Virus record (IMG/VR): IMGVR_UViG_3300005965_000002 | Span: 124,001-188,000 of that record | DNA: 64,000 nt | Strand: one strand, 5' to 3' | Shown here: in pieces, positions 7,083-51,829 of the stretch | Layout of the letters: every line of letters starts with the position of its first letter | How positions within the stretch are numbered: the first letter of the stretch is position 1 | The notes under the pieces: generated by a model | The model's input: the letters and a program-made list of their open reading frames with translations, nothing else | Database searches by the model: none | What the model was told of the DNA's origin: nothing | Translations under genes and position numbers: made by a program

Positions 7083-7880
7083 ATGAAGGAAGTAAGAAAT
7101 TATTTAGATAAATTAGCCGTGAAGCTAGCCAGCCATGGGTTTGAGGATTTTGCTTTTGATGTGTGGGATGCGGGTACCTCGATAATGAGGTACGCTTCTT
7201 CTAACCAGGTAGAGGAAGCTGAAAAAAGATATTACGAAACAAAAAAAGTAGATGATTTAGTAGAGTATCATAACTCGGGGCAAATGGATAGAGACATCGC
7301 AACTATGATAAAGGGCGGGAAGTCTTATAAAGAGATAGCAGAGAGAAAATTCAAGCAGATCCAACAGGATAACCCGCCGTATGCGCACGATCAAGGAGCT
7401 AAACAGTTAGCAGAAAGTTTAATGCGCGGTGTTCAGAGGGGTGCCATAAGAGCAGCTTCTTTGATTATGTCTAGAATGGCATGTTATCTAAAGGACCTGG
7501 GTTATGATAATGAGGCTCAGATACTGCATAGCTCCTTTTCTAAGGTAGCATCTAAGGGCCGTAACGTAGGTGATAAAGTAGAAAATTTTCAAGTAATTTC
7601 TCTTGAAGAAATGTATGAAAATTCTACTCACAAAGCTGAGCAGAAACCAATATTAGAAAATATCCAAATAATGGTTAAAACATATGAATCTGTACTAAAG
7701 CTTATTAAGAAATTTAAGAAAGATTACGAGAAGCTTATAAAGGTTTACTTGAAACAAACAGGTGAAGAAGTAGACAAAAAAGAATTAGAAGAATATTCAA
7801 CTAAAATGGTAGAGTTAATCACATACTATGACACTGCAATCAGTAATGAATTCAGGTCTCTCGCAAAGGCTATGGTATAG
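7083..7880 (+). CDS. Hypothetical head-associated protein
   Basis: 265-aa ORF with two copies of an amphipathic helix motif and RYAS/RAAS/KVAS sites. Confidence 0.6.
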   Translation: MKEVRNYLDKLAVKLASHGFEDFAFDVWDAGTSIMRYASSNQVEEAEKRYYETKKVDDLVEYHNSGQMDRDIATMIKGGKSYKEIAERKFKQIQQDNPPYAHDQGAKQLAESLMRGVQRGAIRAASLIMSRMACYLKDLGYDNEAQILHSSFSKVASKGRNVGDKVENFQVISLEEMYENSTHKAEQKPILENIQIMVKTYESVLKLIKKFKKDYEKLIKVYLKQTGEEVDKKELEEYSTKMVELITYYDTAISNEFRSLAKAMV

Positions 7881-7911
7881 CCTGATCAAGAGCATTTTAA
7901 GGAGCCCCGTT

Positions 7912-8175
7912 ATGAAAGCTCAATTTTTGAGTGAGGCTAGCGGTAAAACTAGTTTTATGAGAGTGATTACCACTTTTATCGTGATTACTATTATGGGAGT
8001 GTTTTTGGCTCAGAATATTATGTCTATGATAAACGGTGGTGGGTTAGTTTCTTTGGGGGTGTCTGAAGCTTCATTGTTAGCCGGTCTCTTAGGTATGAAA
8101 GCTGCCCAAAGGTTTGGTGAACATAAATCAAGTTCTGTGCAGTCATTGCCCGATAATGAGATGCCTAAGTCGTGA
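7912..8175 (+). CDS. Small two-TM membrane protein (holin-like)
   Basis: ATG at 7912 after aaggag; GKTSFMRV followed by two hydrophobic helices and a charged tail. Confidence 0.55.
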   Translation: MKAQFLSEASGKTSFMRVITTFIVITIMGVFLAQNIMSMINGGGLVSLGVSEASLLAGLLGMKAAQRFGEHKSSSVQSLPDNEMPKS

Positions 8176-8444
8176 AAAAATCAGATATTCTACCATCTTT
8201 GGAGTACTATATGCCAAACCCAAAGGATTATGATAATAAGCAAGATTGGATGGATGCCTGTATGTCCCAACAAAAGGACGAAGGCAAAAATATGAAGAAA
8301 GAAGATGAGAGGGATCAGGCAGTAGCCATTTGTCTAAATATGTGGAGAGATAAGAATAAGAAGACTGCCAGTAAGGGCAAGGTAGCGAGCGCCGCCAAAG
8401 CTTTATATAAATTATCAAAGAAATTAGAAGATCTTGGAAAGTAA
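8172..8444 (+). CDS. Small phage head-associated protein
   Basis: PNPKDY...WMDACM...DQAVAICLNMW pattern typical of small phage head-region proteins; KTAS/KVAS sites. Confidence 0.55.
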   Translation: MKKSDILPSLEYYMPNPKDYDNKQDWMDACMSQQKDEGKNMKKEDERDQAVAICLNMWRDKNKKTASKGKVASAAKALYKLSKKLEDLGK

Positions 8445-8445
8445 A

Positions 8446-9669
8446 ATGAAATATCTCATATCCGATTCCCTGAGACGTATTGCATCCGCTTTAGAAGTTG
8501 ATCTAGATAATGTTAAGAATAGCAAAAAGCCGGTTGTTTTCTTAGGTGGAAATGCTTCTGATAATTCCTGGAGAGAAGATATAAAAAAGGAATTTTCCGA
8601 TAAGATTATGTTTTTGGATCCCTTTGATAAAGATTGGGAAGCAGAAGAAAACATATATAAGGAATTAGAAGCATTGATGAAATCGGACAACGTCGTTTTC
8701 TATAAGGGCGGAGAAGGATCTGAAAAAGAAAAAGAATTTCTTGATCAGGTCAAAAAAAGTAATTACGAAGATTTTGACGACTTGAGCGAGCTAAAGAATT
8801 ATCTAAAAAAGATAAGCGGTAAAATGGAAAAAACTGCTTATCCTATAGTAGGTCAACCCGCTTCTGACCTTAAGTTGGAGAAGCTCGATAAAGAATCCAT
8901 CGAGGCTTTAATAGAGGATTTAAAACAGGGTGTGGATATTAAGGTAGACCCAGAAGTAAAAAAGATTCCCAATATGTCCGATTTGCATGAGTTGAAAGCT
9001 GAAGACATAAAAAAAGAGATAGCTAAAGGTAATCCTTTTTTAAAAGTGTTGCTTGATAAGTATAAGAGTTTACCCGGGAGTAAAAACCCAGCGCTCAAAT
9101 ATGATAAAGAAAAACATATGTATATACCAACTGAATTGGGGCAAATGAGTAAATCAGCAAAGCAAGGAATGGTATATGACCGGAGTTCTACTCAATATGA
9201 TTTTCCTGAATTAATAGCTGATAAAGTTCTGCGCTGGTCTAAAAAGAATGTCCCGGATATTGCACTAGGAGAAGATGGCAGAGAAGATGAGATTCATGTT
9301 ACTATTCTTTATGGGTTGTTTACTACAAATCCTTCCGAAGTAGAAGATATTATAAAAAAGTATAACATAGAACCTTTTGAGATAAGACTATCCTTAATTA
9401 CTGCTTTTTTAAATGGTGACCAGGATGTTTTGAAGATAGATGTAGAATCCTCTGGACTCCACAACCTCCATAAGCTACTCCAAGAAAATATCAAGAATGA
9501 TAACAAATATCCGGAGTACCGACCCCACGTAACTATAGCCTACCTTAAAAAAGGCGAATCAGAAAATTACATAGGTAGAGATGATTTTCAGGGAATATCG
9601 TGCAAGGTGAATAATATTGTTTTTAGCTCCAGAACGGGCGATAAAATAGACATTCCTCTTATTGGTTGA
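8446..9669 (+). CDS. Nucleoside 2-deoxyribosyltransferase-like domain + Acb1/T4 gp57B-like 2H phosphodiesterase
   Basis: N-terminal VVFLGG...SWRE...FLDPF...DW...E; C-terminal two HxT motifs EIHVTILYG and YPEYRPHVTIAY; ATG at 8446 preferred over TTG at 8434. Confidence 0.75.
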   Translation: MKYLISDSLRRIASALEVDLDNVKNSKKPVVFLGGNASDNSWREDIKKEFSDKIMFLDPFDKDWEAEENIYKELEALMKSDNVVFYKGGEGSEKEKEFLDQVKKSNYEDFDDLSELKNYLKKISGKMEKTAYPIVGQPASDLKLEKLDKESIEALIEDLKQGVDIKVDPEVKKIPNMSDLHELKAEDIKKEIAKGNPFLKVLLDKYKSLPGSKNPALKYDKEKHMYIPTELGQMSKSAKQGMVYDRSSTQYDFPELIADKVLRWSKKNVPDIALGEDGREDEIHVTILYGLFTTNPSEVEDIIKKYNIEPFEIRLSLITAFLNGDQDVLKIDVESSGLHNLHKLLQENIKNDNKYPEYRPHVTIAYLKKGESENYIGRDDFQGISCKVNNIVFSSRTGDKIDIPLIG

Positions 9670-9671
9670 TA

Positions 9672-9685
9672 ATATTCTATTAATA
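9672..9685 (+). promoter_or_regulatory. Putative late promoter motif copy 2
   Basis: ATATTCTATTAATA upstream of 9747. Confidence 0.6.
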
Positions 9686-9746
9686 ATACACATAAGTAGA
9701 TTCTATAAGATCTCAGACTATATTCATATCCAGAAAGGAGTATGAG

Positions 9747-10853
9747 ATGGCAGAACGTAACTATGTCGCTCTCGTTGATTTCAATGTCAACATCGACAAC
9801 GGTAAGGAGACAGTAAAAATAACGGCTGGCTCTGAGTTTTCATACGACGGGTTGTATGTTACTTTTGGTGATTCCAGAGGAATGTGCAAACCTCTAGGTA
9901 AGATGGCTGGAGAATGGTTTTCAGTATCCAATAATCAGCCAGCACAGACTAAGCCTGCAGCGCCTAACCCCAATACCACTAAATCTAGAGTAGAGAATAG
10001 TGATGAAGTACCGAACGCTCCTGTAGTGAATGCGGGGAAAGATCGAGAACTAGAAGGCATGGTGGATAACTATGAAAAGGGTACTTACAAAAATCCTTCA
10101 GCAAAAGTTATCCACGATGATGAGGCTGTAGTCGGCCAGGTAAAGAATACCGACCAGAACGCAGTAAAAAATACGACAGGTGTTCAGATGAATGAGCAAC
10201 CGGATAGCGAAAAAAGGGTTGTTTATGAGGAAGAAAGGGTTGCTAAGGAAACCGTCCCCCAGAAGCCTGATGAGGGTGAAAAGCACCTGAAGGTAGAAGG
10301 CGAAGGAGATGGCGTTTTAGTTAAGGAAACCAGTCCTCTGTCTGAAGTAGAAAAGCTTAGGAAGCAGTTAGCAGAAGCTGAGGCTCGTCTTGCCGAATCA
10401 CAGAAACCCCAGGTTTCTGTCGAAGAGGATGCAGTTAAAAAGACTTCTGCTCTGAATAACCAATCTACTGATATTGGTTCTTCCACTCAGGCTCAAACTA
10501 TAGAAAAGCCAGCAACTCCAAAGGGGAAACTTTCCGGAAAAAAGACTGGAACTTTGAAGAGAGCGACAAACTCAGGTAGACCTGTAGTGATAGAAGAGCA
10601 AGAGGGTACTGTAGTTGGTAAGGTAAAAAATACCAACGTTAATCAGACAAAGGATGGTATTACCATCCGTACCCGTGTGAAGAATATGGATGATGTGGAG
10701 GAGGCGGCGGTTACCTATGGTAACTCTGTACCGGATGAACCCTCTGTAGAAATAACCGGGTCTGAACCATCAGCAGTTGACGCCTCTGATGTCGGTGTGC
10801 CTGTTCAAAAGGATGCTGATATCGACGTAGAGGATTTACTTAGCGAAATATAA
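9747..10853 (+). CDS. Hypothetical acidic, largely low-complexity protein
   Basis: 368-aa ORF with good RBS (aaggag); recurring acidic-V-V/K motifs (DDEAVVGQV, EEQEGTVVGKV). Confidence 0.65.
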   Translation: MAERNYVALVDFNVNIDNGKETVKITAGSEFSYDGLYVTFGDSRGMCKPLGKMAGEWFSVSNNQPAQTKPAAPNPNTTKSRVENSDEVPNAPVVNAGKDRELEGMVDNYEKGTYKNPSAKVIHDDEAVVGQVKNTDQNAVKNTTGVQMNEQPDSEKRVVYEEERVAKETVPQKPDEGEKHLKVEGEGDGVLVKETSPLSEVEKLRKQLAEAEARLAESQKPQVSVEEDAVKKTSALNNQSTDIGSSTQAQTIEKPATPKGKLSGKKTGTLKRATNSGRPVVIEEQEGTVVGKVKNTNVNQTKDGITIRTRVKNMDDVEEAAVTYGNSVPDEPSVEITGSEPSAVDASDVGVPVQKDADIDVEDLLSEI

Positions 10854-10864
10854 GGTAGGTTCAA

Positions 10865-12625
10865 GTGGCGGCAAGGGTTTGGAAAGTAGTGGCTGATTAT
10901 TTAGACGGCCCAAACTATAGCGTTTTCTTTCAAGAACCTGCCTGGATGGACTATATGAAGCAGAAGGCTGAGAAGCCTAAAGGAAAAGCTCCTGAGTCCA
11001 TTAAGAAGATGATCAAAGAAAAAGGTCTTTCCGAACCCTTCCCCGCCTATAATCCTTATGATTATCAGTCTCCTACTGATAAGCCAAAGGATTTAAAAGA
11101 CGGGCCTCCTTTTCAAAACGAATTTCCCAATTATCCTATTAATCCTCCCCACGCTGAATTTAACAGAGGTAAAGTATTCAGCCCAGGTGGAGTAATGGAT
11201 TATAAGTATAAGACACGTAACCAAGATTGGACACAGGATCCGAGCGAGCAGTATCCTGCCATCAGTATAGACCGTAAGTATGCTTCTGATGAGCAGGTAA
11301 AGAGGGTGGTAGCTGGGTACTTACTCCAGCATATGCCTCTGGTGCTCAATCCAGAAGATTTCGATGATTTTGGAGCGTATATAAAGACAGCCGCAAGCTT
11401 AAATGAGATCATATCAAAGGATTTTCACTATAAAAATGATGAAAAGATTAATAGAGCAGAACAGTGCTCTGTAAAACGCTTGAATCGACCAAGTGAGATA
11501 GAGCAAGGAATGATACGCTACCATGTAAATTGTACTGGGTCCCCGGATACACATACAGTTGTTTTTCAGTTTATGAGGGATAAAACAGGGAGACGTCCTG
11601 ACACATATGCAGATTACCCTGTACAGATAGCGTGTAGCTGTGAATCTTTTCTTTTTTATGGGGCTCAGTATTATGCCGTGCAGGGTGAGTACATGTATAT
11701 GCCGAGATTTAGAAGATCCTTGGTTCCTCCCACTCCACACGAACAGATTTCTAGCACGGAAGGCAACAGACTGAATCCTGGTAGAGGTTTGAATTTTAGG
11801 GTGTGTAAACATATTCTTGCTTGCTATAACCAAATAAAAGGAATGAGGATTACAAAATACTATAGAAATTACCCGGAAATTGGGGCTCCTTCGAAGATAA
11901 TGAATAAGGAGCAGTGGAAAAAATTACTTAAGTTTGAATTTACTAAAGAAAACATTGTAAAAAGATTGACCTCATCAAAGCCAAAAATACCAGCATACTA
12001 TTCTAGTAAAAACATTAAACCTGAGTTAAATAAGTGGTTTAGAGAAGTATATGTTCCTAGAACAGAAGATGAAAAGATAAAGATTCTTGAAACGTTAGTG
12101 GAGCATCCTGAAGAAATTTTCTTTCTTGCAATAAAGGATGCGTACTTCCGACAGGGTAATCTTTCGAAGAGATATGTTGATAAGGTATATGATCTACTGT
12201 CAAAAGTTATAATGCCAGAAAGTGACCAAGAGCCCAGACAAGAGAAAATGGAAGGGGTGCCTGAGGAACAACAAGAGGTAGGCAAAGGCACTGGTATGGT
12301 CATTCCAGATGTAGAGAATATCCTGTCCGAGCGTGTAGAAGGTGAATTCGATGAAAGCATGATAAAAGATATTGAGACAGAGATAGAAAATATTAACCCG
12401 GAACTAAAGGGTGATAAGAAGGAACAAGCTATAGAAACCATAAAGTCTCAATTGATTGATGGCTTAGCCAAAGAAATAGAAGATGAGCTTAAGAAGCCTT
12501 ATGCTACCACGCCACAGGAAAAAATAGATAACAAATTAAAAAAGATAACACCTACATCTATAAGGAGAAAAATATGGAAGTCTATACAGCAGAATGGTCT
12601 GCAGCAGATATTAGGGGAGCTATAA
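10865..12625 (+). CDS. SWIM-type zinc-finger domain protein
   Basis: IACSCESF...VCKHILAC (CxC...CxH); KYAS and KTAA sites before the domain. Confidence 0.7.
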   Translation: MAARVWKVVADYLDGPNYSVFFQEPAWMDYMKQKAEKPKGKAPESIKKMIKEKGLSEPFPAYNPYDYQSPTDKPKDLKDGPPFQNEFPNYPINPPHAEFNRGKVFSPGGVMDYKYKTRNQDWTQDPSEQYPAISIDRKYASDEQVKRVVAGYLLQHMPLVLNPEDFDDFGAYIKTAASLNEIISKDFHYKNDEKINRAEQCSVKRLNRPSEIEQGMIRYHVNCTGSPDTHTVVFQFMRDKTGRRPDTYADYPVQIACSCESFLFYGAQYYAVQGEYMYMPRFRRSLVPPTPHEQISSTEGNRLNPGRGLNFRVCKHILACYNQIKGMRITKYYRNYPEIGAPSKIMNKEQWKKLLKFEFTKENIVKRLTSSKPKIPAYYSSKNIKPELNKWFREVYVPRTEDEKIKILETLVEHPEEIFFLAIKDAYFRQGNLSKRYVDKVYDLLSKVIMPESDQEPRQEKMEGVPEEQQEVGKGTGMVIPDVENILSERVEGEFDESMIKDIETEIENINPELKGDKKEQAIETIKSQLIDGLAKEIEDELKKPYATTPQEKIDNKLKKITPTSIRRKIWKSIQQNGLQQILGEL

Positions 12626-12861
12626 ATTTAGGATTCCATTATTTAGAAAACATGGACTGTATTGTGGGTCATGTGTTTACGCCTCCCATATTAATGAAAA
12701 ATATCATTATAGAGTGCTCCGAGGATGTAGTGTTTGACTTCATACCCGAAGGCATCGGCTTAATTAGAACAGCCTATTTAAAGTATAAGTTTGGGAAGAA
12801 TAATAAAATTGTTTTTGTCGATCAGCATAAGACAAAAGAGGTGGTCATTACTTTAAAATAA
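12574..12861 (+). CDS. Hypothetical protein
   Basis: 95-aa ORF filling the gap; start uncertain because of a 52-nt overlap. Confidence 0.45.
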   Translation: MEVYTAEWSAADIRGAINLGFHYLENMDCIVGHVFTPPILMKNIIIECSEDVVFDFIPEGIGLIRTAYLKYKFGKNNKIVFVDQHKTKEVVITLK

Positions 12862-12905: not shown

Positions 12906-13367
12906 ATGCCTACCTATGAATACCGCTGCAGTGAATGTGGGACAATAAAGGAAATTGTCCACTCAATCAAGGAATCCCCAAAGTTTTTTTGTGAGTCATG
13001 CGATCCTGAAAATAAAAAAGACCCCTTAGAGCGTCTGATTTCCCAAAACATAGCCGGGGGCTTTTGCTTTAAAGGGATGGGTACGGAGAGCATGATTTGG
13101 AAAGAGAAGCGTATAAGGAATAAGAAAAACGCTGATCTTGAGATGCGCCAGTTGGAGCGTTGGGGAGGTTCCACCCCTAAGCTTACCCCAAATGTTGGTG
13201 GTGAGGTCTATGATAGCTGGGACGATGCCGGTAAAGCTGCGAAATCCAAGGGTTTAGATGACTCAAAGTATAAGCAGCAAGCTGAGGCCAGTAAGAGTAT
13301 CAGCAAAGTATCAGGTATTGATGACAGTAAGTGGAAGGCTGTGAAAGAGAAAAAGAATTCCGTATGA
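12906..13367 (+). CDS. FmdB-family zinc-ribbon protein
   Basis: MPTYEYRCSECG...FFCESC...LERLIS signature; RBS aaggag. Confidence 0.8.
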   Translation: MPTYEYRCSECGTIKEIVHSIKESPKFFCESCDPENKKDPLERLISQNIAGGFCFKGMGTESMIWKEKRIRNKKNADLEMRQLERWGGSTPKLTPNVGGEVYDSWDDAGKAAKSKGLDDSKYKQQAEASKSISKVSGIDDSKWKAVKEKKNSV

Positions 13368-18939: not shown

Positions 18940-19908
18940 ATGATTGAAAGTAACCGCACAGCTGGGATAACAAAATATCTGGATTCTCCATCTCAGGTAT
19001 TTAATAGGCTAAAGGACGAGACTCTATTATTCTTTGACACAGAAACTACTGGTCTTAACCCCCACCAGTGCCAGTTGACTGAAATTGCTGCTCAGGTAGT
19101 AAGAGGCCCTAGCTTTGAAGTCATTGATAGCTTTGATAGGAAAATAGATCTTAACGAAAAGACTTTGAATAAAATCAAAGAGGAGTCTGAGGGTCACAAA
19201 GACCCTAAAAAAATGACTGTCGAACAGATTCTAAAGATGAATCGATATCACGATAATACTAAAAAGTCAGAATCTGAAGACAAAGTGTTGAATGACTTTT
19301 ATGATTTCTGCAAAAAGTATAATCCTATTATAGTAGCTCAGAACGCAAAATTTGATCTTGATTTCGTTAACACTCGTGGAGATAAAAAGATACCGAATAA
19401 GGGTGTTTATGACACAATGCTTATGGCACGGTATTGGTTCATCCCGGCTGTTAAAACTCTTTCAGAAAAAGATGTATTAAAGGAAAAAATTAGAAGTCGA
19501 ATTATTACGGATGATAAAGGAAAAATTCGATCCACTTTAGGAAATCTTATTAAAGCTTTTGCTGAAAAAATCTCAGGATGGCACCGTGCTATAGATGATG
19601 TAAAATCTACGGTTAAGGCGTTCCAAAAGATTATGAACTACTTCGAGGAATATAAGGATGTTCATGAAGAAGATAAATATAAGAGTGAGATGGGAAAAGC
19701 ACTAAGACGGCAAAAAGAAGTCACTATGACGCCTGGTAAAAAGAAGTGGCTGGAAAAGCAAAGAGGCAAGAAATTGGAATATAAGTATGCCTCAAGTATT
19801 GTGAGTGCTTTGGATCTATTAGCAGATAAGTTAGAATTTAAAGGATATACGAAAAAAGCATGTCAATTAGATATACTTAGTAATTCTATAGAATCATTTA
19901 TTAGATAG
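18940..19908 (+). CDS. DEDDh 3'-5' exonuclease (DnaQ/epsilon-like) with C-terminal helical extension
   Basis: Exo I FFDTETTG, Exo II AQNAKFDLDF, Exo III WHRAIDDV. Confidence 0.88.
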   Translation: MIESNRTAGITKYLDSPSQVFNRLKDETLLFFDTETTGLNPHQCQLTEIAAQVVRGPSFEVIDSFDRKIDLNEKTLNKIKEESEGHKDPKKMTVEQILKMNRYHDNTKKSESEDKVLNDFYDFCKKYNPIIVAQNAKFDLDFVNTRGDKKIPNKGVYDTMLMARYWFIPAVKTLSEKDVLKEKIRSRIITDDKGKIRSTLGNLIKAFAEKISGWHRAIDDVKSTVKAFQKIMNYFEEYKDVHEEDKYKSEMGKALRRQKEVTMTPGKKKWLEKQRGKKLEYKYASSIVSALDLLADKLEFKGYTKKACQLDILSNSIESFIR

Positions 19909-20837: not shown

Positions 20838-21047
20838 GTGGCAACCTCTGATACTTTTCAAGGACGAATAGGAACCGTATCTCCAGCCTTCGCCCAATAC
20901 TACGAAACTATCGGTATTAATTTAGATATAGGCGCTTCTGGGGTAGCAGGCGTAACTGGTGCAAATACCCTTCAACCCTGGAAGCATGTTGTAGGTCTAA
21001 CAGGTATACAGGGCAGCAATAGAGTACACTCCAACCACGAGTATTAA
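20838..21047 (+). CDS. Small hypothetical protein with collagen-like stubs
   Basis: GTG start after gaggt; GASGVAGVTGA and GLTGIQG. Confidence 0.55.
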   Translation: MATSDTFQGRIGTVSPAFAQYYETIGINLDIGASGVAGVTGANTLQPWKHVVGLTGIQGSNRVHSNHEY

Positions 21048-22002: not shown

Positions 22003-26643
<4,641 letters not shown>

Positions 26644-27772: not shown

Positions 27773-29305
27773 ATGTCAGTAGCTTTTTATCCGGGTCAAA
27801 CGCTAGAAAGCACAGACCTTAATATTATCATAAGAAACGACACAGGAACCCCTGTAGATCCGTTTTATATTCGTTACTCGCTTTTTGATAATACTACTGG
27901 TATTCCCGTCCTTATAGGAGCTCCAAATAGAGTGCCCGCGACCACCGGGGTTGGTAAGTACTATGCAAATGCTACTTTACCACTAGATTCCAATATAGGC
28001 GATTGGATGATCCATTGGGATTTTAGAGAAACCTCAGGCAGTCCGATGGTACAGGTAGTCCAAGAATTTAATGTAGTGGACCAGGAAGTACGAATAACTG
28101 TATCCGATAATAATAACATGAATGATATGATCCGTAGAGTCAGAGTGCTCTTGCGAGACAATAATCCCGACAGAAATTATCGCTTCAGACCACCAGCTTC
28201 AGAAAAGTTCCTACAATCTCAAGCACAGGTTTTTGGTTATATCTGGGAAGATGAAGAAATACTTGAATACATTTTAATGGCTATTGATGACTTTAATGCT
28301 GCCCCTCCTGTAACCGGGGTAACTATAGATAGTATCCCGCTGAGATGGCGTACAGCCGTTATTCTTAGGGCTTGTTCGTTTGCCTGTTTTGCTATTGCAA
28401 TGAACTGGATAGCTGATGAGTTTTCCGTAAAAGGGGACGAAAAGGTTAAGGTTAAGGACGAGGAAGGTAACGTTTATGAATTATCATTAGAAGAACTATT
28501 TGATGTAATATATGGTGATAAAATTTTGGAGATGGAGAAAGAAGTACGGGACGAATATAAGAAAGTTATGAAGGAACTAGATAGTGATCAATTAGTTATG
28601 AATAGAGAAAAAAACACATTTGTAAAAACCATAAAAAAAGTTTTCAGGAAGATAAAGGATATCCTTGTAAAGAAAAAAGCATACAATGTTGATAAGATAA
28701 AAGAATCTTTTTATAAAGGTAGGCTAGAAGTAAAAAGCTTATCGGAAGATAAGGGGAATGTTGATTGGGTACCTATAAAGGATATATATAGGCACAATTC
28801 CCTATATAAAAAGATGATAAAGGTAGTTACGGATAAAGGAGATGTAGTAGTAACCGACGACCACAGTTTGTTTTCTTGGGAGACAAAAAAGCCTATAGCA
28901 GCTAATAAGTTGAAGATAGGGTATCCAATAATAGCTAATGAAAATAATATTTTAGTAAAAGCTGTCATAAGAAGTATAGAAGATAATCCCGCCGAAAATT
29001 ATACATATGATTTATGCGTACCTGGAACCGAGAGCGCTTTTTTGTCCTCTGGTATTTTGGTTCATAATTCTTATACCATATCAGGCGTATCTCTGGATGT
29101 TGATAAAAGTGCAAAATATGAAGGTATGAAGAACAACTTTATCACTGAGTATGATAAGTTAAAAGAACAAGCCAAGAGATCTATTAAGATCATCCGTGGC
29201 CTTCGTCAACCGAGATACGGTGTGGGCATTTCCTCAGCACTCGGACCCTATAGTAGCCCGGGTGTCCAAGCCCGCCGCAACTTTATATCTGGCTTTAGAA
29301 ATTAA
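27773..29305 (+). CDS. Neck / head-tail connector protein interrupted by an intein
   Basis: IRRVRVLLRD...WEDEEI...AIDDFN connector-like core; exteins join as WIADEF|SYTISGVSLD. Confidence 0.7.
   Translation: MSVAFYPGQTLESTDLNIIIRNDTGTPVDPFYIRYSLFDNTTGIPVLIGAPNRVPATTGVGKYYANATLPLDSNIGDWMIHWDFRETSGSPMVQVVQEFNVVDQEVRITVSDNNNMNDMIRRVRVLLRDNNPDRNYRFRPPASEKFLQSQAQVFGYIWEDEEILEYILMAIDDFNAAPPVTGVTIDSIPLRWRTAVILRACSFACFAIAMNWIADEFSVKGDEKVKVKDEEGNVYELSLEELFDVIYGDKILEMEKEVRDEYKKVMKELDSDQLVMNREKNTFVKTIKKVFRKIKDILVKKKAYNVDKIKESFYKGRLEVKSLSEDKGNVDWVPIKDIYRHNSLYKKMIKVVTDKGDVVVTDDHSLFSWETKKPIAANKLKIGYPIIANENNILVKAVIRSIEDNPAENYTYDLCVPGTESAFLSSGILVHNSYTISGVSLDVDKSAKYEGMKNNFITEYDKLKEQAKRSIKIIRGLRQPRYGVGISSALGPYSSPGVQARRNFISGFRN
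28424..29068 (+). mobile_element. Mini-intein (215 aa, Ser1, no endonuclease)
   Basis: Starts SVKGDEKVKV; block B VVVTDDHSLF; block F YTYDLCVPGTE; ends ILVHN followed by Ser. Confidence 0.85.
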
Positions 29306-31731
29306 TTTTCTTTATTGATTATATTTATTTGTCTTTTTATCCATCTTTTATTTTCATTTAAATGCTCAGCCATTTCTTGATATGTCATAGTGCCCCTATT
29401 ATTCTTTATAAAGTATATTTTATATTTATTTTTTCGGCTTTTAGTACTACCTATAGGATTCTTCGGAGACAGAATTCCATCTTTTATCATAGATCTTACT
29501 CTGCCACTGACCCATCTTTTAGTTTCGTTTAAGTTTATAGCTATTTTTTCCTGGGTCAAGCTTTGGTAGTTATCTAAGATATATTGATCTTTTTCTTTTG
29601 TGATTCTAGAGTTGTTACTTATCCTTTTGCTTGTTCTTTTGTTTTTAGATATTTTTATCAAGTTACTATAAAAGTCGCTAAAATCATCAACGGGTACACT
29701 ATTTCTTTTAGGGTAAACTTTATCTTTATATGTTTTAAGCTTTTCCAAAATTTGTTTTTCTCTTTTGTTACAGCTTGTGAGAAGTGCGTATTTATGTTTT
29801 TTTGAGATAGGTATCTTTACTGATTTATTAATAATGGATTTTATATCTTTGTACCACTGATGTAATATTTCCTTAGGTATCTTTTTTATATTTTTATATC
29901 CGTTGTCTTTAAACCATTCACTTTTAGTTTCTATTCCTTTACTTTTGCACCAAGCTTTAAAAGCTGAAGTTCTTTTTAAGCTTTGTTCAGAGAAGGGTAA
30001 ACCATTTTTAATTTCTTTATTTTGGTATACATAACCGGTTCCGAAATCATCCCCAAGATACGAAAAGTTACAACTTTGATATATAGTACCTATTTCATTT
30101 GCCTTTGGATCTGCGTAGCAGACAAATAGCCTCTTAGGTGTGTTTTTAGTCATCCACTTACAGGAAAACATTATTAACCTACTCCCTAGGTTTTTCGGTG
30201 TCCATGAAGCAGTAGCTCCCCGTTGTATAAGGGCTTCAAAGTGTTTCGTATTCTCTCCTAATAACTTAGAATAAGAGTTTGGCTCATTAATTAGAACTAC
30301 GCCGCCCAAAAATCCTTTATATCGTGCGGTAAAAACCCATTTAGGATTGTTTCCTATTGTACCTAACCATTCATACTTTTCTATAAAGTGTTTAATTTCT
30401 TTTGTATATTTTTCTTGCTTTAGCACAAAGTCTTTTGCCTTTATCTTTGAATAGTCAAAGCTTATATTTTCTAAATCATTTTTTAATGTAGATACTTTTA
30501 TTTTGTATTGATGGCAAACAGATTTAGACGCTTTTTTGTTTAACTCATCGGTGATAAATTCTATAATATCTCCTTTTTTTTCATGGTCTACGACCAACCT
30601 GGAGTCAAATCTTACTAAATTATCTATAACGGAGTTTTGCCTTTCATCTCTAATAGATGTTTTTAAGATATTTTCCTTTCTAGGCCCTTTCTTAAAATCT
30701 TTAATCTTACCATGCCAGAAATATCCATCATATTGTACCCACACGTTAATAGATGGTAGATAGAAATCAATATTAGATTTTGAAATAGGGTGGTATACCT
30801 GGAACTCGGTATAGGGGTCTATCTTTTTAAGATACATAAGAAATTTTATTTCTTCATCGGAAGAGCTAAAGGTATTTTTTTCTTTTGATGTGTTTAATAC
30901 TTTTTTATAGATTTCCTCATTCTGCAGGGGGCTAGGTACTCCATATTTTTTAATGTTGGTTTCTTTTATTTTTTCTTTTGTAGGTTCATCCTGAAATATG
31001 TTGTCTACTCCATACTTTTTGTTTAATGTAGATTTTACCTTATTCCTTACTGCAGGGTCTTGGGAAGGATACTCTACTCCTCTTCTTTTAAGATTAGTTT
31101 CTCGGCTTTTTCTTTTCATAGATTCTAATTGAGTGGTGTACTGCACTCCGTATTTAGCTTGTACGGCTTTGGAGGTACCTAGGACATTGTCTTTTTTTAT
31201 AATATCCGGGTTTCTACTTAGACCCAATTGGTTAGCTTTATACCTAATAGATTTCCATGATCTACTAAATTTATTGATTAAAAATTCTTTAGTATTGTTG
31301 ACATATATTTCTTTCAAAAGATTTATTTCTTCCTCTTTCCAGAAATCTTCTCTTTCTGGTACTTTTTTACCACCTTCAATAGATTCTTTTTTTACTATTT
31401 CCGGATCTCTCCTTAAACCCATTGCATAAGCTTTCCCCCAAATTCCAGACCAGGGTCTATTTAATTTGTCTTGGATTTCTTTTTTAGTACCAATTGGGTA
31501 TATTGACTTAAGAGTCGATAACTCTTCCTCGGACCAGGAATCTTTTCTTTTCCCCCTAGTGGCTCGGTCTTTTCCAATCACAGTGGCGTCTCTTTTTAAT
31601 CCTAGCTTTTTTGAGCGTCGATAGATAGTAGCCCATTCTTTATCGAGTAGTTTAGTCAATTCCGATTTTCTTTTATTTTCAAAATTTTCTCTTAGGATCT
31701 TATCTTCTTCAGGAGTCCATCGTTTAGCCAT
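29302..31731 (-). CDS. Myb-like repeats + basic repeats + DUF559/Vsr-like nuclease + Mom-like GNAT domain + HTH fusion
   Basis: 3x W(T/S/K)xEE..L..LGL.R repeats; KKYGV repeats; IDFYLP...VQYDGYFWHG; FIEKYEWLG...KNLGSRLI...YADPKANEIGTIYQSCNFSYLG; two terminal HTHs; only credible minus-strand gene. Confidence 0.8.
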   Translation of the reverse strand: MAKRWTPEEDKILRENFENKRKSELTKLLDKEWATIYRRSKKLGLKRDATVIGKDRATRGKRKDSWSEEELSTLKSIYPIGTKKEIQDKLNRPWSGIWGKAYAMGLRRDPEIVKKESIEGGKKVPEREDFWKEEEINLLKEIYVNNTKEFLINKFSRSWKSIRYKANQLGLSRNPDIIKKDNVLGTSKAVQAKYGVQYTTQLESMKRKSRETNLKRRGVEYPSQDPAVRNKVKSTLNKKYGVDNIFQDEPTKEKIKETNIKKYGVPSPLQNEEIYKKVLNTSKEKNTFSSSDEEIKFLMYLKKIDPYTEFQVYHPISKSNIDFYLPSINVWVQYDGYFWHGKIKDFKKGPRKENILKTSIRDERQNSVIDNLVRFDSRLVVDHEKKGDIIEFITDELNKKASKSVCHQYKIKVSTLKNDLENISFDYSKIKAKDFVLKQEKYTKEIKHFIEKYEWLGTIGNNPKWVFTARYKGFLGGVVLINEPNSYSKLLGENTKHFEALIQRGATASWTPKNLGSRLIMFSCKWMTKNTPKRLFVCYADPKANEIGTIYQSCNFSYLGDDFGTGYVYQNKEIKNGLPFSEQSLKRTSAFKAWCKSKGIETKSEWFKDNGYKNIKKIPKEILHQWYKDIKSIINKSVKIPISKKHKYALLTSCNKREKQILEKLKTYKDKVYPKRNSVPVDDFSDFYSNLIKISKNKRTSKRISNNSRITKEKDQYILDNYQSLTQEKIAINLNETKRWVSGRVRSMIKDGILSPKNPIGSTKSRKNKYKIYFIKNNRGTMTYQEMAEHLNENKRWIKRQINIINKEN

Positions 31732-41619: not shown

Positions 41620-41666
41620 AACAATTTTACAACAAGCATTAGTTTTTAATACTTTTGGAGGATAAC

Positions 41667-42425
41667 ATGGATCTTAAAGTTGCCGCTGAGAATCTGTTAA
41701 AAGTTGCAGATCAAATAGAAAGAGAAGCAGAGCAAAAGACTGTTTTTGCTTGCGAATCCTGTAATCATACTGCCACTCTGGCAGAAATAAATGCGGCTCG
41801 TAAGTCTTTCGCTGAGAAGGAAGCTTCAGAAACTGGTAAATCTGTGCGTGTAGCAAAAATCACTGTAAATGATAAGGTAGCCTGCGGTAACTGTGGTGAA
41901 GGCGCTATGTGCTATGAGTCTGATGAAGTGAGCTCTAAGTATTGGGTCGAAGCTGCAGATGAAGATGATTTAGAAACTCTTGATATAGCTGAAGAAGACG
42001 ATAAAGAAGTTTCGGAAAAAGAAGAGGATAAAGAGGAAGATAAAGAAGATTCTGATACTGAAGAAGATAAAGATACCGATGAAGATACGGACGAAGAGGA
42101 AAGTGAAGAGGAAGAAGAACTTCCCGATGACCTTTTTGAGCCTGTAGATGAACAGGATGATAAAAACGAGAAGGAAGAGGGAGAAGAAGAAGATAAAGAA
42201 GAAGAGTCTACTGAAGAAGATGATGAAGAGACAGACACAGAAGATATTGACGATGAAGAAGATGAAGAAGAGCCTAAGCCTAAGCCTAAGCCTAAGAAGA
42301 AAAAGAAAGACAGCCCTACAGATGGAAAAGCTAATGTGAATAAAGAGCCGCCGCCAAAGTTTGAAAAGATGCCTAAGGAAGCATCTGATCGTTTTTGGTC
42401 TTCGGTTTCAAGATATTCAATCTAA
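41667..42425 (+). CDS. Zinc-ribbon protein with long acidic tract
   Basis: CESCNH...CGNCG; about 100-aa D/E tract; KPKPKPK; ATG after ggagga. Confidence 0.7.
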   Translation: MDLKVAAENLLKVADQIEREAEQKTVFACESCNHTATLAEINAARKSFAEKEASETGKSVRVAKITVNDKVACGNCGEGAMCYESDEVSSKYWVEAADEDDLETLDIAEEDDKEVSEKEEDKEEDKEDSDTEEDKDTDEDTDEEESEEEEELPDDLFEPVDEQDDKNEKEEGEEEDKEEESTEEDDEETDTEDIDDEEDEEEPKPKPKPKKKKKDSPTDGKANVNKEPPPKFEKMPKEASDRFWSSVSRYSI

Positions 42426-45388: not shown

Positions 45389-45396
45389 ATTGGCCA

Positions 45397-46862: not shown

Positions 46863-46874
46863 GGATAATGTAGA

Positions 46875-46888
46875 ATTATCTATTAATA
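46875..46888 (+). promoter_or_regulatory. Putative late promoter motif copy 10
   Basis: ATTATCTATTAATA upstream of 46939. Confidence 0.6.
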
Positions 46889-46938
46889 TGTATAAGTTTA
46901 ATGGACCTAATATAAAGATTTAGATATGGAGATGAGAT

Positions 46939-47397
46939 ATGCCGATGTACGAGTACAAGTGCGGTCATTGTGGTTTTGAGTTCGAGGATATCACTTCCTT
47001 CGAGAAGAAGGATGATACCCGTAAATGTCCAGACTGTGAATCTATTGATGTCGTCCGGAAGCAGATATCCAGTTTTTCCTTTAAAACATCAATAGACCCG
47101 AGAAAGGGAGACACGGTAGCGACAAACAAGGAAATCGATAAAGTTGTAGGAGAGGCTTCCGCTATAAGGTGGGAAAATCTCGAAAAGAGAAGAAAAGAGA
47201 GATGGAAAAAAGGAAAACCGTTAGAGATAGCGGTTCCCAAGGATAATAAAGGACAACCCCGACCGATGGAAGTGGTGGGTACTGAGAAGCAGAGGCAGTT
47301 TAGAAAAGAATTCTCAGAAGCTTTAAGAGAGCATAGAAAAGAGAGATCCAAAAAGGGTCTGAAGCAGTTTGATGGTCCTGGAGCTATTACCGACTAA
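46939..47397 (+). CDS. FmdB-family zinc-ribbon protein (second paralog)
   Basis: MPMYEYKCGHCG...KCPDCES...VRKQISS. Confidence 0.8.
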   Translation: MPMYEYKCGHCGFEFEDITSFEKKDDTRKCPDCESIDVVRKQISSFSFKTSIDPRKGDTVATNKEIDKVVGEASAIRWENLEKRRKERWKKGKPLEIAVPKDNKGQPRPMEVVGTEKQRQFRKEFSEALREHRKERSKKGLKQFDGPGAITD

Positions 47398-47403
47398 TTG
47401 GTA

Positions 47404-47417
47404 ATAATCAATTAATA
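47404..47417 (+). promoter_or_regulatory. Putative late promoter motif copy 11
   Basis: ATAATCAATTAATA upstream of the sheath gene. Confidence 0.55.
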
Positions 47418-47521
47418 TTAACATCAAATATAATAGAATATCCCATATGAGATTCAGTTGTCCTAAATATTAAGGATATTAGATTGAAATCAATTAGTTC
47501 TGAATAAAAAGGAGAAATAGC

Positions 47522-50485
47522 ATGGCTATAGGACCGTTAGAATCTTTTGCCTTTCCTGGGGTATTTACTAGAACGATAAATGAGTCCACTGCTACCACCG
47601 CTGCAGGAGATATAAGGTTCCCTGCTATTATCGGTGTCGGGGCAGAAGAGCTAAGAGTCAGCGATTTTGAGATGATCAGAGGAAGCTCTTCTGTTGCTGA
47701 TAATCTTATTATCGATGAAGATGTAAGCTCCCAGCTTGATGGTACCAACAAAACTTTCACTGTTGAAAATTTTCCTATTGTTACCGGAGATGGAAATGGC
47801 ACAGTAGCAACATTACCTAATAATGTTATTGTTCTTGTTGATGACGAGCCTGTTCCCGTAGCAAAAGTTGAAGGATTGATTGGTCAGGTTACCCTGGTTA
47901 ATATTCCCGGGACGAACAGCACAGTAAGAGTAAATTATTACTACAAGCGTAGAGATACCTACATTGAAAATGAAGATATCTCCGACCAGGCTGACGGAAC
48001 AAACAAACAGTTTAAAGTAAAAAGTCGCAGAATTGTTACTGGGGACAACGGCGGCACCTCAGCCACAGACACTGAAATTAATCAGACAGTTGAAATTCTT
48101 TATGATCCTACCACTTCGGTAGGTGACGAATTCTTGAGAACTGTTCCGATTATCCAGGTTACTGTCGATGGTAACATTGCTACGATTACCGACCTGGACG
48201 GTGCTGATGGAATGTTCACTCTTCAAACGGCTCCCGCCTCTGATTCAGTTGTTCTTGTTAATTACTTCACGAACGATTGGCAGAATACTTTTGATATCCT
48301 TCCAGCAGCGCAGGTAAACAGGCTGGTTAAAGTCGGTCTTAGTCAGGATACCTCTGATTATTCAATTGGGAATGACTGCGTCTTGGCCGGAAGCAACAGA
48401 ATCCATTGGGGTCATTCTGTACAGACTCAAACTGGTATTTTTACATCTGGAGCTACACCTCTTGTTGATAGTGTTGTTGCTTCTCTTAGAGATGATAAAG
48501 TTTACGGTAGACTGGCTGAGCCTGATAAAGTGGCTACGGATTCGAGCGGAAACACAATTACTGACTCTTTAGGTAGAGCCTTGAATGATACTAACAATAA
48601 AGTGTTTGTTCTTCCTACTAATCCGGTTGATGGTACTGGCGTAGGAAAGTCTACTGAGAATATGAATGATGGTCCCGATTCGGGATCCTCAGATGATATT
48701 ATAGCTTATGTCGGATCAGACTGGGACGATGCTTTAAGTAACGGCCCTGTTACCATCACTAAAGTTGATGGTAATAAAATCTGGTTATCAACCGCTCCTT
48801 CACAGGCTCTTGAAGAAAAGGTTTTCGTTACTTATTACGAAAATAATTTGATAGACGAAACTTGGACAATTACTAATAAAGTTTCTGGTGGAATCGGTGT
48901 TGGAAAATATACGATTACTTCTAGAGTCAGTGGAAACGGAATCGCAGTTACACGCACGGGAGACGGGTCGATTGCTCCTGTTTATGCAGGGTCGGGCGCT
49001 GTAGACGTACAGGTTAATCCTCTTAAGGGCAGTGTAGAAAGAGTAACTATTACTTTTGACGGCACTGGCGGTTTCACAGTTACTTCTAAGCTGGGACCAA
49101 CTTTTACGACTGACGGTCGCACGGGTTCAGTAACAGCTAATGATGCTAATAAAGGATACCTGGGACAGACTTATATTGATCCTACCACAGGGTTCAGAGT
49201 TACTTTCTCTTCAGATACAGGATCCTTTGACCCGGGTGATGGTGATACCGTGGTCTATGATCTTGGTAATCCTGAAACTACTGATGCGGAAGAGAGATTC
49301 TATATCGATGTCGACACCGATTTTATAAGAGCCATTCCGGGCATCAACCTTACGGTAAGCAATACTTCCGGAGGTGGTGTTGATAACGTTGATAACACCG
49401 CCTTGGTAAGAACATATAACAGAAGCGGAAACGAGCCCTCAGTGGGAGATACCTACTACGTTTCTTTTGACAGGCAGAAGACCAGCTATCTTAAGAGATT
49501 TTTCACATCAATGAGTGACGTTATAAGAGAATACGGACCCATTGATCCTAATAATCCTATTGTTGTAGCTGCTAACCTTATGTTCTTGAATGGAGCCAGG
49601 GCGATTGTTATTAAACAGATCCAAAAGGCTGCTGGTCAGACAGACGCAACTGTTCAATCTTATATTGAAGGAATCGATGAATTTGACGAACCTCTGTCTA
49701 ACGGTTTGCGGCCTTCTTTGATCCAACCTCTGACCACTAACAGTGAAGTTCAGAATTATCTGAAACTTTCTAACGCTACTCAGAGTAGTCTCCGTTACAG
49801 AAATGAGCGTACTAGTATTATCGGTTTTGCTACCGGAACTACTCCTGACCAGGTAATACAGAGAGTGAAGGCTATCAAGAGCGAAAAGATAACAGCCGTT
49901 TATCCTGACTCAGGAATCATCGCAATTGAAGATGCCTTTGGAAATGAAGTCGAGTATATTTTCGACGGTTCTTTTATAGCGGCAGCTTTAGCTGGACGAG
50001 ATGTTTCTCCGGTTAATGATATAGCTACTACACTTACTAATAAAAACATTGTAGGATTCAGAAGACTTAACAGGAACCTTGATAATGTGACAGCTTCCTT
50101 GGTTGCTAACGCAGGTTGTACAATGTTAGAGGATAGAAATAACTCAATCCGAGTTATGTTTTATCTAACAACTGATCTAAGTACTCCTCTTACACGTAAC
50201 CCCAGAATAGTAGAAGTAAAACACTTTATTCAGAAGGGACTGCGTGACGTCCTTGATAGATATATAGGGGTAAAGAATCTTCCTAGAGTTATACCTCAGG
50301 TATCTGCTACAGTAGACTCCTATTTCAGGAGTCTAAAGCAAGCAAACATAATAGCAGATTTTCGCCCCAGCAAAGTAACTCAAAATAATACGGATCCGAG
50401 TACTTTAGATGTAGAGGGATTCTATAGCCCAGTATTTCCTGTCAACTGGATTATTGTCACACTTAACCTGAGAAGTTCAATATAA
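47522..50485 (+). CDS. Contractile tail sheath protein
   Basis: N-terminal FPGVFTR; C-terminal AAALAG...TNK.I.GF...AGCTMLE...FYSPVFPVNWIIVTL sheath signature. Confidence 0.9.
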   Translation: MAIGPLESFAFPGVFTRTINESTATTAAGDIRFPAIIGVGAEELRVSDFEMIRGSSSVADNLIIDEDVSSQLDGTNKTFTVENFPIVTGDGNGTVATLPNNVIVLVDDEPVPVAKVEGLIGQVTLVNIPGTNSTVRVNYYYKRRDTYIENEDISDQADGTNKQFKVKSRRIVTGDNGGTSATDTEINQTVEILYDPTTSVGDEFLRTVPIIQVTVDGNIATITDLDGADGMFTLQTAPASDSVVLVNYFTNDWQNTFDILPAAQVNRLVKVGLSQDTSDYSIGNDCVLAGSNRIHWGHSVQTQTGIFTSGATPLVDSVVASLRDDKVYGRLAEPDKVATDSSGNTITDSLGRALNDTNNKVFVLPTNPVDGTGVGKSTENMNDGPDSGSSDDIIAYVGSDWDDALSNGPVTITKVDGNKIWLSTAPSQALEEKVFVTYYENNLIDETWTITNKVSGGIGVGKYTITSRVSGNGIAVTRTGDGSIAPVYAGSGAVDVQVNPLKGSVERVTITFDGTGGFTVTSKLGPTFTTDGRTGSVTANDANKGYLGQTYIDPTTGFRVTFSSDTGSFDPGDGDTVVYDLGNPETTDAEERFYIDVDTDFIRAIPGINLTVSNTSGGGVDNVDNTALVRTYNRSGNEPSVGDTYYVSFDRQKTSYLKRFFTSMSDVIREYGPIDPNNPIVVAANLMFLNGARAIVIKQIQKAAGQTDATVQSYIEGIDEFDEPLSNGLRPSLIQPLTTNSEVQNYLKLSNATQSSLRYRNERTSIIGFATGTTPDQVIQRVKAIKSEKITAVYPDSGIIAIEDAFGNEVEYIFDGSFIAAALAGRDVSPVNDIATTLTNKNIVGFRRLNRNLDNVTASLVANAGCTMLEDRNNSIRVMFYLTTDLSTPLTRNPRIVEVKHFIQKGLRDVLDRYIGVKNLPRVIPQVSATVDSYFRSLKQANIIADFRPSKVTQNNTDPSTLDVEGFYSPVFPVNWIIVTLNLRSSI

Positions 50486-50487
50486 GG

Positions 50488-50518
50488 GTAGAGGAGCTTA
50501 GCTCCTCTACTTCTTTTT
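50488..50518 (+). terminator. Rho-independent terminator
   Basis: gtagaggagc-tta-gctcctctac-ttcttttt. Confidence 0.8.
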
Positions 50519-50554
50519 AATTAGAATCTTAATCGATTATATAAGGAGAAAACA

Positions 50555-51829
50555 ATGGATCGTATAGCACTGTCGGAAAGATTTGAAGGATTAGCAGACG
50601 TCTTCAGCAGCGAGAGTAAGATTGCTATTGATTTGAAGGCCATGGCTCACGTACTGCGTGAGGCTGATGACGACTCTTTTACAAAAATTATAAATCCTAA
50701 GTTTGCCAGTATGGGGGCTGAAGCTGAGGATAAGGAAGCTGTTTTTAAGGGCGTAGCTCCGGCTGATTACAAATTACCGGAGAGTAAGAGGAGTCTTACA
50801 CCCAGAAAGCTTACGGATGACGAAAAAGCTAAGATGTTCGACGAAATGATTAAAGGCGGGTTTGGTCAGCAGGCTAAAAAATTTGTAACTGATATCGTTG
50901 AAAAGGTGCAAGGTGGTGGGATGTCTAAGGGAGCTACCGAAGAGGAAACAATTGAAGCTTCAGAAGAAGTATCAGAAAACTCCTTTTGGTCTAAGGAAGC
51001 TAATGACACAGTAGCTCAGAATCTACTGCGCAATGTCCTTGGGATGGATAAACAAATTTGTTGTGATACTAAGAGTAAGCTTACTCCTGAACAGACTCCT
51101 GATGGAAAGCATAAAGGAGTTCCGGAGAGGCCTGCTACTTTGAAACCTGAACAGACGCCCGACCAGGTTGATGATCTTGATTCCAATATGGTTGAAAAGT
51201 CTAAGGGTAAAGTTCGCAAGGAAGCTGGAAAGATTAAAGGACCGGGCAACCCTGATGGCACCGGGCCTCACTCAGGTACAGAAGAGTGCCCTAAGTCTGA
51301 AGAAAATAAGAAGGAAGCAAAAGGAAAAGGCAAAGCTAAAATGGTTAAATGCCCCAAGTGCAAAGGTGATGTTCTTGAAACAACCGGATATTGCTTAACG
51401 TGCAAAGGTGATATCAAAGATATGGGCAAGGGCAAAAAGGCTGCTGAAGAGTCCAAAGATATGGAAAAGAAAGAAATGAAAGCCATTAAGGACATCGCTA
51501 AAGCCATCGATAGTCTTAAGGATTTAGAGAAAAAAGAAGAAGAGATGGGTATGGGCGATCCTGAGCATGAAGAAGCAGAAAAAGAAATCCTCGATAATAT
51601 GACTGAGGATGTAGAGAAGTTAAAAGACCTTGAGAAAGAAGAAGGCGGAGAAGATACAGAGGAAGATATAGAAGAAATGAAAGAAATGGAAGCTTCTAAG
51701 AAGGAAGCATCCACTCAGATTCAGTCAACTGTTGTAGCTGAGGGAATTGAACTAAGCGGCGGAGACGCCATGGATGAGATATCACTCGACTCTCCTGAGA
51801 TTCAGAAGCTTAGCTCTCTTTTTAACTAA
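50555..51829 (+). CDS. Charged head-type protein with CxxC...CxxC ribbon and many KxA sites
   Basis: KCPKCK...YCLTCK; KFAS, KEAN, KEAG, KKAA, KEAS; acidic C-terminus. Confidence 0.65.
   Translation: MDRIALSERFEGLADVFSSESKIAIDLKAMAHVLREADDDSFTKIINPKFASMGAEAEDKEAVFKGVAPADYKLPESKRSLTPRKLTDDEKAKMFDEMIKGGFGQQAKKFVTDIVEKVQGGGMSKGATEEETIEASEEVSENSFWSKEANDTVAQNLLRNVLGMDKQICCDTKSKLTPEQTPDGKHKGVPERPATLKPEQTPDQVDDLDSNMVEKSKGKVRKEAGKIKGPGNPDGTGPHSGTEECPKSEENKKEAKGKGKAKMVKCPKCKGDVLETTGYCLTCKGDIKDMGKGKKAAEESKDMEKKEMKAIKDIAKAIDSLKDLEKKEEEMGMGDPEHEEAEKEILDNMTEDVEKLKDLEKEEGGEDTEEDIEEMKEMEASKKEASTQIQSTVVAEGIELSGGDAMDEISLDSPEIQKLSSLFN

Follow-up and report, generated by a model that had tools for sequence, protein, structure and literature searches.

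Do proteins encoded downstream of the capsid gene of an uncultivated huge phage share a tag that takes them into the head, together with a site at which the prohead protease trims them? The question is raised by a stretch of 64,000 nucleotides, bases 124,001-188,000 of the linear IMG/VR virus record IMGVR_UViG_3300005965_000002 (258,580 bp, estimated to be 55% complete), which at its full length we call the window. A first-pass annotation of the window had proposed that an amphipathic helix common to many unrelated proteins, often flanked by sites of the form [K/R]-x-A-[S/A/G], loads enzymes into the head, where a prohead protease cuts them. We tested both patterns, helix and site, on the 273 genes called across the whole contig. 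Two elements prove to be real; each is non-random and conserved, and they tend to occur together: a K-x-A-S motif that clusters in head proteins, and a two-helix module of about 35 residues. Whether K-x-A-S is the site of the prohead protease and the module a detachable handle that brings its carriers into the prohead core is, in our judgement, about an even call.

The genes of the record use the standard bacterial code, and to judge from its sequence the source is an uncultivated, phage-G-like huge phage. This assignment follows from the identity of its major capsid protein (MCP) to those of the uncultured 485 kb phage LR745208 (74%), Tunturiibacter phage Tunturi_5 (50% to the major head protein) and Bacillus phage G (39% to gp27), and from relatives in IMG/VR on contigs of 300-470 kb. 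Mycobacterium cluster C phages are more distant (28%; all four values by tblastn). IMG/VR holds 552 further relatives of the capsid gene, several of them on contigs in this size range; the comparisons below include a 467 kb relative whose MCP is 82% identical (G001) and three others with 74-80% identity (G002-G004). A megablast search of GenBank phages with window positions 1-12000 gave no match. Phage-G-related huge phages are frequent in metagenomes, and the construction and contents of their heads are almost wholly obscure.

The head genes form a block directly upstream of the window in the order large terminase, portal, small proteins, g118870, a 190-residue protein, protease, scaffold-like protein, decoration-like protein and MCP; the order portal, protease, scaffold, MCP is identical in Tunturi_5 and phage G. 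The members to which we refer are:

Genome 114,696-118,139: portal protein g114696, 1147 residues, with an intein
g118870: head-block protein of 405 residues
Genome 120,685-122,253: protease g120685, 522 residues
g122358: acidic scaffold-like protein, 357 residues
Window 94-975, plus strand: MCP, 293 residues, assigned by tblastn to phage-G-type capsid proteins

The K-x-A-S motif (K.AS in pattern searches) occurs 39-41 times in the genome where about 23 occurrences are expected (39 against 23.2 with per-protein shuffles, z 3.3; 41 against 23.3 in the ranking of patterns). It ranks 34th among 4594 patterns of the form a.bc, and the higher ranks are mostly due to collagen-like repeats. Neither K.AA, K.AG, R.AA nor R.AG is enriched genome-wide; for [KR].A[AG] a 2.6-fold excess is limited to the head block. 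The code as first defined was thus too broad, and across the genome its enrichment over shuffled sequences holds for K.AS alone. The entire excess lies in two regions: the head block has 17 K.AS sites against 2.6 expected (P 3e-9) and window positions 1-20 kb have seven against 2.3, whereas the remaining genome has 17 against 18.5. In phage G, which served as an independent check, K.AS again takes rank 34, here among 6025 patterns, and the head block from gp4 to gp27 contains 12 of the 63 sites where 2.4 would be expected (P 7e-6). K, A and S can be arranged around one free position in 12 ways, and K.AS is the only arrangement enriched in either phage; composition therefore does not explain the enrichment. 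The residue three before the serine (P3) is lysine in 58 and arginine in 17 of 75 head-block sites from four phages and is never hydrophobic; the A-S pair was fixed by the search pattern, so that its presence is not an independent result. The sites show no further preference among flanking residues. In the genome of Tunturi_5, just one pattern of this form is more enriched than K.AA (79 occurrences where 38 are expected), and K.AS is only mildly enriched, which may reflect a shifted site preference or simply linkers rich in lysine and alanine.

The sites occupy equivalent places in the source phage, LR745208, Tunturi_5 and phage G, namely both ends of the portal, the position after the protease domain and the C-terminal tail of the scaffold. 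Directly after the protease domain, [K/R]-A-A-[S/R] is found in 103 homologues, and the scaffold site, about 20 residues before the C-terminus, is kept in 36 of 45 relatives from the clade. When the 23 [K/R]-x-A-S sites were compared with orthologs in G001, 17 were matched within eight columns (background 7.8%, P 1e-14), despite a local identity of just 0.15-0.5 in what are poorly conserved linkers. The MCP has K-T-A-A at residues 19-22, near its N-terminus as the first-pass annotation had it, and K-L-A-A-S at residues 26-30. The former site reads [K/R]-T-A-[A/S/G] in 54 of 61 clade relatives and is missing from phage G; the MCP might be cleaved at this place.

A protease that could read such sites is encoded 1.7 kb upstream of the window, between the portal and the scaffold and capsid genes, and matches phrog_18299 (E 1.6e-12). 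We modelled its residues 1-290 with AlphaFold2 using 36 homologues (pLDDT 82.6). An exhaustive VIA-align search with this model placed the proteases of varicella-zoster virus (VZV; 1vzv, Z 10.5) and human cytomegalovirus (HCMV; 8j3s, Z 8.3) and gp21 of T4 (5jbl, Z 10.0) at the top, with the protease of Kaposi's sarcoma-associated herpesvirus (KSHV) also among the best matches; the next unrelated folds reach Z values of at most 6.4. Foldseek returned nothing for the model at E<=0.001, several of its weak rows being herpesvirus proteases, and a profile search of the PDB with the protease gave nothing useful. Since Foldseek alone is not significant, it is the VIA-align ranking of the predicted structure that assigns the protease to the gp21/assemblin fold group. 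H50, H109, S116 and S170 are invariant among the 36 homologues. A protease of this fold next to the capsid genes, together with the clustering of K-x-A-S in head proteins here and in phage G, lends indirect support to the processing by a prohead protease that had been proposed.

The second element is longer than the single amphipathic helix of the first-pass annotation. We built a profile from six copies of the helix and scanned the proteome with it, using 30 shuffled proteomes as control. The seed copies score 18-61 bits, and three copies outside the seed were recovered, at the N-terminus of g57509 (21 bits), in residues 612-644 of g24393 (19 bits) and in residues 112-144 of g27907 (15 bits). 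The scan that had been suggested for the helix thus yields nine copies at 15-61 bits, against a best score of 8.0 in the shuffles. These align as a unit of about 35 residues in which a leucine and a glycine are invariant, with the core L-D-K-I-A-x-S-L-E-x-K-G-L-x-K-E-A-x-x-L-D-V-I-S-N-T-I-E. An AlphaFold2 model from 45 copies predicts a helix-turn-helix (helix 4-18, a turn at K-G-L, helix 22-39; pLDDT 91.5). The module is acidic: its consensus has a net charge of -4, and the copies of the source phage range from -1 to -5. Its first helix is clearly amphipathic. In an all-against-all BLAST comparison, collagen-like repeats set aside, it is the main short similarity among otherwise unrelated proteins.

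Searched with the profile, a set of 1.84 billion representative proteins gave 490 matches at E<=0.001, of which 15 reach E<=1e-10. The best 150 of these 490 proteins contain 164 located copies, 100 N-terminal, 13 C-terminal and 51 internal, and nine positions are more than 90% conserved among them. No Pfam family covers the module in any carrier, and there is no PHROG match; tblastn against GenBank phages with one carrier (P0024) gave no match at E<=1. A PDB sequence search returned designed coiled coils only, at E 0.05 or worse, and Foldseek found only generic hairpins with E above 2. To judge from its sequence, the module is uncatalogued and strongly conserved. The majority of carriers are small and have no known domain; the domains recognised in others include NT5C 5'-nucleotidase (7 of 134), DUF3228 (3), DEDD exonuclease, 2H/Acb1-like phosphoesterase, SET and peptidase C39. 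Within the clade the distribution is patchy, with nine copies here, 12 in G001 (five of the carrier genes adjacent to one another on the opposite strand) and one in G005, and modules near the capsid gene are seen only with an MCP identity of 82% or more. The module also appears to move between neighbouring genes. A metagenomic contig (P0002) is syntenic with window positions 12.9-20 kb, and the module is found there on a DUF3228 protein while the exonuclease is shorter than its counterpart in the window.

Site and module go together. Among internal modules 25 of 51, and among C-terminal ones 8 of 13 (49-62%), have a [K/R]-x-A site no more than 16 residues upstream, compared with 14% of control windows, and the commonest arrangement is K-x-A-S, four further residues and then L-D. 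Downstream of N-terminal modules, E-K-x-A stands at one fixed position in 41 of 158 cases, and [K/R]-x-A occurs within 16 residues in 45 of 100. Were cleavage to fall between A and S, the new N-terminus would lie about five residues before the module, which is the distance also seen at native N-termini. The head-block protein g118870 has a diverged copy of the module with a longer turn, as do its orthologs, and in most relatives G-K-K-x-A-A comes after this copy.

The window genes that carry the module or the sites, or for which either had been claimed, are as follows.

7083-7880, plus strand: 265-residue protein with no known domain (no Pfam or PHROG match) and two module copies
7089-7187, plus strand: module copy 1 of ORF 7083, residues 3-35, at the native N-terminus, 55 bits
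7452-7544, plus strand: module copy 2 of ORF 7083, residues 124-154, internal, 45 bits
8172-8444, plus strand: 90-residue protein with K-T-A-S, K-V-A-S and the module's first helix at its end
8434-9669, plus strand: enzyme with nucleoside 2-deoxyribosyltransferase-like and 2H phosphoesterase (LigT/Acb1-like) parts (PF13563, PF23474, PF15891)
10865-12625, plus strand: 586-residue protein of unknown function with K-Y-A-S at 11276-11287
18940-19908, plus strand: DEDD 3'-5' exonuclease, 322 residues, with a C-terminal module (PF00929, phrog_192)
41655-42425, plus strand: acidic zinc-ribbon protein with K-E-A-S at 41817-41828 and 42375-42386
50555-51829, plus strand: acidic, lysine-rich zinc-ribbon protein with K-F-A-S at 50699-50710 and K-E-A-S at 51701-51712

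All helix and site strings quoted in the first-pass annotation are present in the reading frames named, and the claim that the helices are flanked by K/R-x-A-S agrees with what we see at the true modules of the window. In ORF 7083, R-Y-A-S (7188-7199) directly follows the first module, and the second is enclosed by R-A-A-S (7449-7460) and K-V-A-S (7542-7553); an ortholog (P0004) retains both copies. The exonuclease ORF 18940 has K-Y-A-S (19783-19794) directly before a module of 56 bits (residues 286-319; 19795-19896). Both are retained in one ortholog (P0135), and the G001 exonuclease is shorter and aligns without the C-terminal tail, the module being on a neighbouring gene there. ORF 8172 has its two sites at 8361-8372 and 8379-8390 and only half a module, the first helix (residues 73-89; 8388-8438), which scores 18.5-26 bits. 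It overlaps ORF 8434 by 11 bases in a different frame. In a metagenomic protein (P0121), homologues of the two are fused in one frame, which runs on through a true module to another 2H-type domain resembling that of g59788.

Of the seven helices said to be shared, two in ORF 7083 and one each in ORFs 8172 and 18940 therefore belong to the module, whereas the other three do not. LRRIASALE in ORF 8434 scores 1.5 bits and is a helix intrinsic to the enzyme family; it is conserved inside P0121, whose true module is elsewhere. LLKVADQIE in ORF 41655 and FEGLADVF in ORF 50555 have no profile match at all.

The sites of module-free window genes that are kept in G001 include both of ORF 41655, which read K-V-A-S and K-K-A-G there, and the C-terminal site of ORF 50555, whose N-terminal site is lost. 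In ORF 10865 the sequence D-R-K-Y-A-S is identical in the G001 ortholog, and the residues after it resemble those after R-F-A-S of the head-block protein g118547. A short similarity of this kind, A-S-[D/T]-[D/E]-x-V-K-[R/K]-V-V, follows three K/R-x-A-S sites, in ORF 10865 (window 11276-11320), g118547 (genome 118,781-118,843) and g105615 (genome 105,837-105,890); the strict pattern was not found in 80 loci of relatives. A tail sheath gene (phrog_2839, E 1e-28) occupies window positions 47522-50485, which places ORFs 41655 and 50555, with their conserved K-x-A-S, among tail rather than head genes.

Taken together, these observations suggest the following scheme. K-x-A-S, less often R-x-A-S and sometimes K-x-A-A or K-x-A-G, would be the recognition site of the prohead protease, for which the analogy with assemblin would place the cut between A and S. 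The protease would trim both ends of the portal, itself, the tail of the scaffold and several small core proteins, and also the products of ORFs 7083, 8172, 10865, 18940, 41655 and 50555 downstream of the capsid gene. The module would have been copied onto unrelated proteins, and because it lies beside K-x-A-S or at a native N-terminus, maturation would cut it from its carrier; it would then most likely be a detachable assembly handle that brings the carriers into the prohead core. We hold with fair confidence that K-x-A-S is a processing code read by the protease, which the distribution of the motif supports well, if indirectly; the cleavage itself and its scissile bond are inferred. That the module targets its carriers to the prohead or capsid is plausible by analogy, and we infer it with less confidence.

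The parallels for such a scheme come from several systems. In T4, as here, a short terminal tag is found on unrelated proteins, a prohead protease is present (the model of the protease described here aligns with gp21 at Z 10.0), and the genes run from the portal through small core proteins, protease and scaffold to the capsid. The T4 capsid targeting sequence is about 10 residues long, exclusively N-terminal and removed by gp21, which cuts after L/I-x-E; the module, by contrast, is a two-helix unit of about 35 residues at either end or inside the protein, its site is K-x-A-S, and the two have no sequence similarity. The herpesvirus assemblins, among which the VZV, HCMV and KSHV enzymes are the best structural matches, cut (V/L/I)-x-A|S. 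They share with the sites described here the A-S pair and a variable residue before the alanine, and the positions of the sites suggest that here, too, the protease would cut itself behind its own catalytic part and would cut the scaffold near its C-terminus. They differ in that the residue three before the serine is hydrophobic rather than lysine or arginine; moreover, the host here is bacterial and the bond cut is putative.

In phages of the phiKZ/SPN3US type the proteases gp175 and gp245 trim head and ejection proteins at S/A/G-x-E. Thomas and co-workers are said to have found in 2012 that many head proteins of phiKZ-type giant phages are trimmed at one short motif. The motif differs from K-x-A-S and the MCP is of another lineage, the one described here being small (293 residues) and of the phage G type. 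To our knowledge, no shared propeptide module has been described for phiKZ/SPN3US-type phages. The predicted hairpin of the module also recalls the C-terminal helix-turn-helix of the P22 scaffold, about 40 residues that bind the coat protein and suffice to direct cargo fused to them into procapsids; that domain, however, is basic and the module acidic, there is no sequence relation, and binding of the module to the coat is hypothetical. If the module is a capsid address, it also resembles the cargo peptides of encapsulins in that short terminal peptides send diverse enzymes into an HK97-fold shell, although those peptides are extended, about 10 residues long and not removed by a protease. Prohead proteases are already known to remove tags in T4 and phiKZ-like phages, and P22 offers a precedent for a helix-turn-helix that binds the coat.

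Several points count against the scheme. The module is absent from G002-G004, whose head genes are the same, and from the whole records of phage G, Tunturi_5 and LR745208, with the exception of a single weak match (E 0.06) in the head block of LR745208. The genes of several carriers are remote from those for structural proteins, one of them on the opposite strand, and three copies in the source phage have no strict K-x-A-S flank. On the side of the site, the boundaries of the head block in this genome were set after the list of sites had been viewed, which is why phage G was tested, and the total for K.AS is slightly raised by the first helix of the module, where K-I-A-S is a frequent reading. 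The literature that we searched contained no paper on the cleavage specificity of this protease family. Two runs of complex prediction for the MCP (alignment A3) and the module (A1) each gave a score of 0.00 and are evidence neither way.

The main rival takes up the points on the module. In this view the module serves generally for docking or oligomerisation in the infected cell and has nothing to do with the capsid, while K-x-A-S is still the protease site and adjoins modules for other reasons. The nature of the carriers (5'-nucleotidases, exonuclease, 2H phosphoesterase, SET and C39 domains), the scatter of copies over the genome, the adjacent opposite-strand carriers in G001, the patchy distribution among relatives with the same head genes and the resemblance of the first helix to designed coiled-coil heptads all favour this explanation. 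We regard it as possible but rather doubtful, as it leaves unexplained why the module is so frequently bounded by a motif otherwise confined to head proteins, and why a diverged copy is present in g118870, a conserved member of the head block. Alternatively, the module might be a nucleic-acid-binding motif akin to the helix-hairpin-helix. Some carriers are nucleases or nucleotidases, and the best, non-significant Foldseek rows include the hairpin of the DNA polymerase beta lyase domain; however, the module is acidic, has one glycine in place of a G-h-G hairpin, and is mostly carried by proteins without a nucleic-acid domain, and the fold matches are generic, which makes this explanation very improbable.

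The site, too, could be read otherwise, as a conserved motif of head proteins that is not cut and serves for binding, for modification or as a helix cap. Its serine could N-cap the first helix of the module, and cleavage is so far a prediction. Against this, the sites lie in variable linkers or near protein ends and occur in proteins and phages that have no module; the pattern of portal ends, post-protease position and scaffold tail is that known for the prohead proteases of T4 and phiKZ-like phages; and A-S is the scissile pair of assemblin, whose fold the protease is predicted to share. A role without cleavage is therefore unlikely in our view. Least credible of all is that both patterns are products of chance or composition, picked by eye. 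The three unsupported helices and the loose site definition of the first-pass annotation would fit this explanation, and the shuffles, the permutation control, the replication in phage G, the conservation in orthologs and the 490 database matches contradict it.

A bolder version of the proposed scheme is that module and K-x-A-S together form a portable, self-removing capsid address, with which one subclade loads arbitrary enzymes into the head for injection before gene expression begins. We offer this tentatively and think it rather less probable than not. If it is true, the 5'-nucleotidases, the DEDD exonuclease and the Acb1-like 2H phosphoesterases would be cargo, ready-made factors for counter-defence or takeover; the address would indicate which enzymes these phages deliver with their DNA and would provide a compact tag with which proteins could be loaded into large HK97-type shells. 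With the cleavage motif defined, mature virion proteins and packaged cargo could be predicted across the group from sequence alone. In the literature we searched, the motif, the module and their combination in the phage G lineage seem not to have been described; we found there no paper on a capsid address in huge phages and, for phage G, nothing on processing.

Some further features of the locus deserve mention. The portal intein contains a LAGLIDADG endonuclease (PF14890, PF14528); the portal gene has intein-end similarity with g61976, as does g67986 with g89102. Window positions 22003-26643 encode a protein of 1546 residues that consists mostly of collagen-like G-x-y repeats and lies in a stretch of raised G+C content (0.45-0.48). 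Three more collagen-like proteins are encoded at genome positions 211-228 kb, and a small ORF at window positions 20838-21047 resembles a decayed piece of the repeat. The gene at 29302-31731 is the sole long gene of the window on the minus strand and coincides with its lowest-G+C stretch (0.338). It has a repeated segment of about 60 residues in common with ORF 3029-3868 (BLAST E 3e-6) and may be a mobile or homing-type gene. Window positions 12906-13367 and 46939-47397 encode paralogous small zinc-ribbon proteins (PF09723) with near-identical N-termini, and the former gene is kept in synteny in the P0002 contig.

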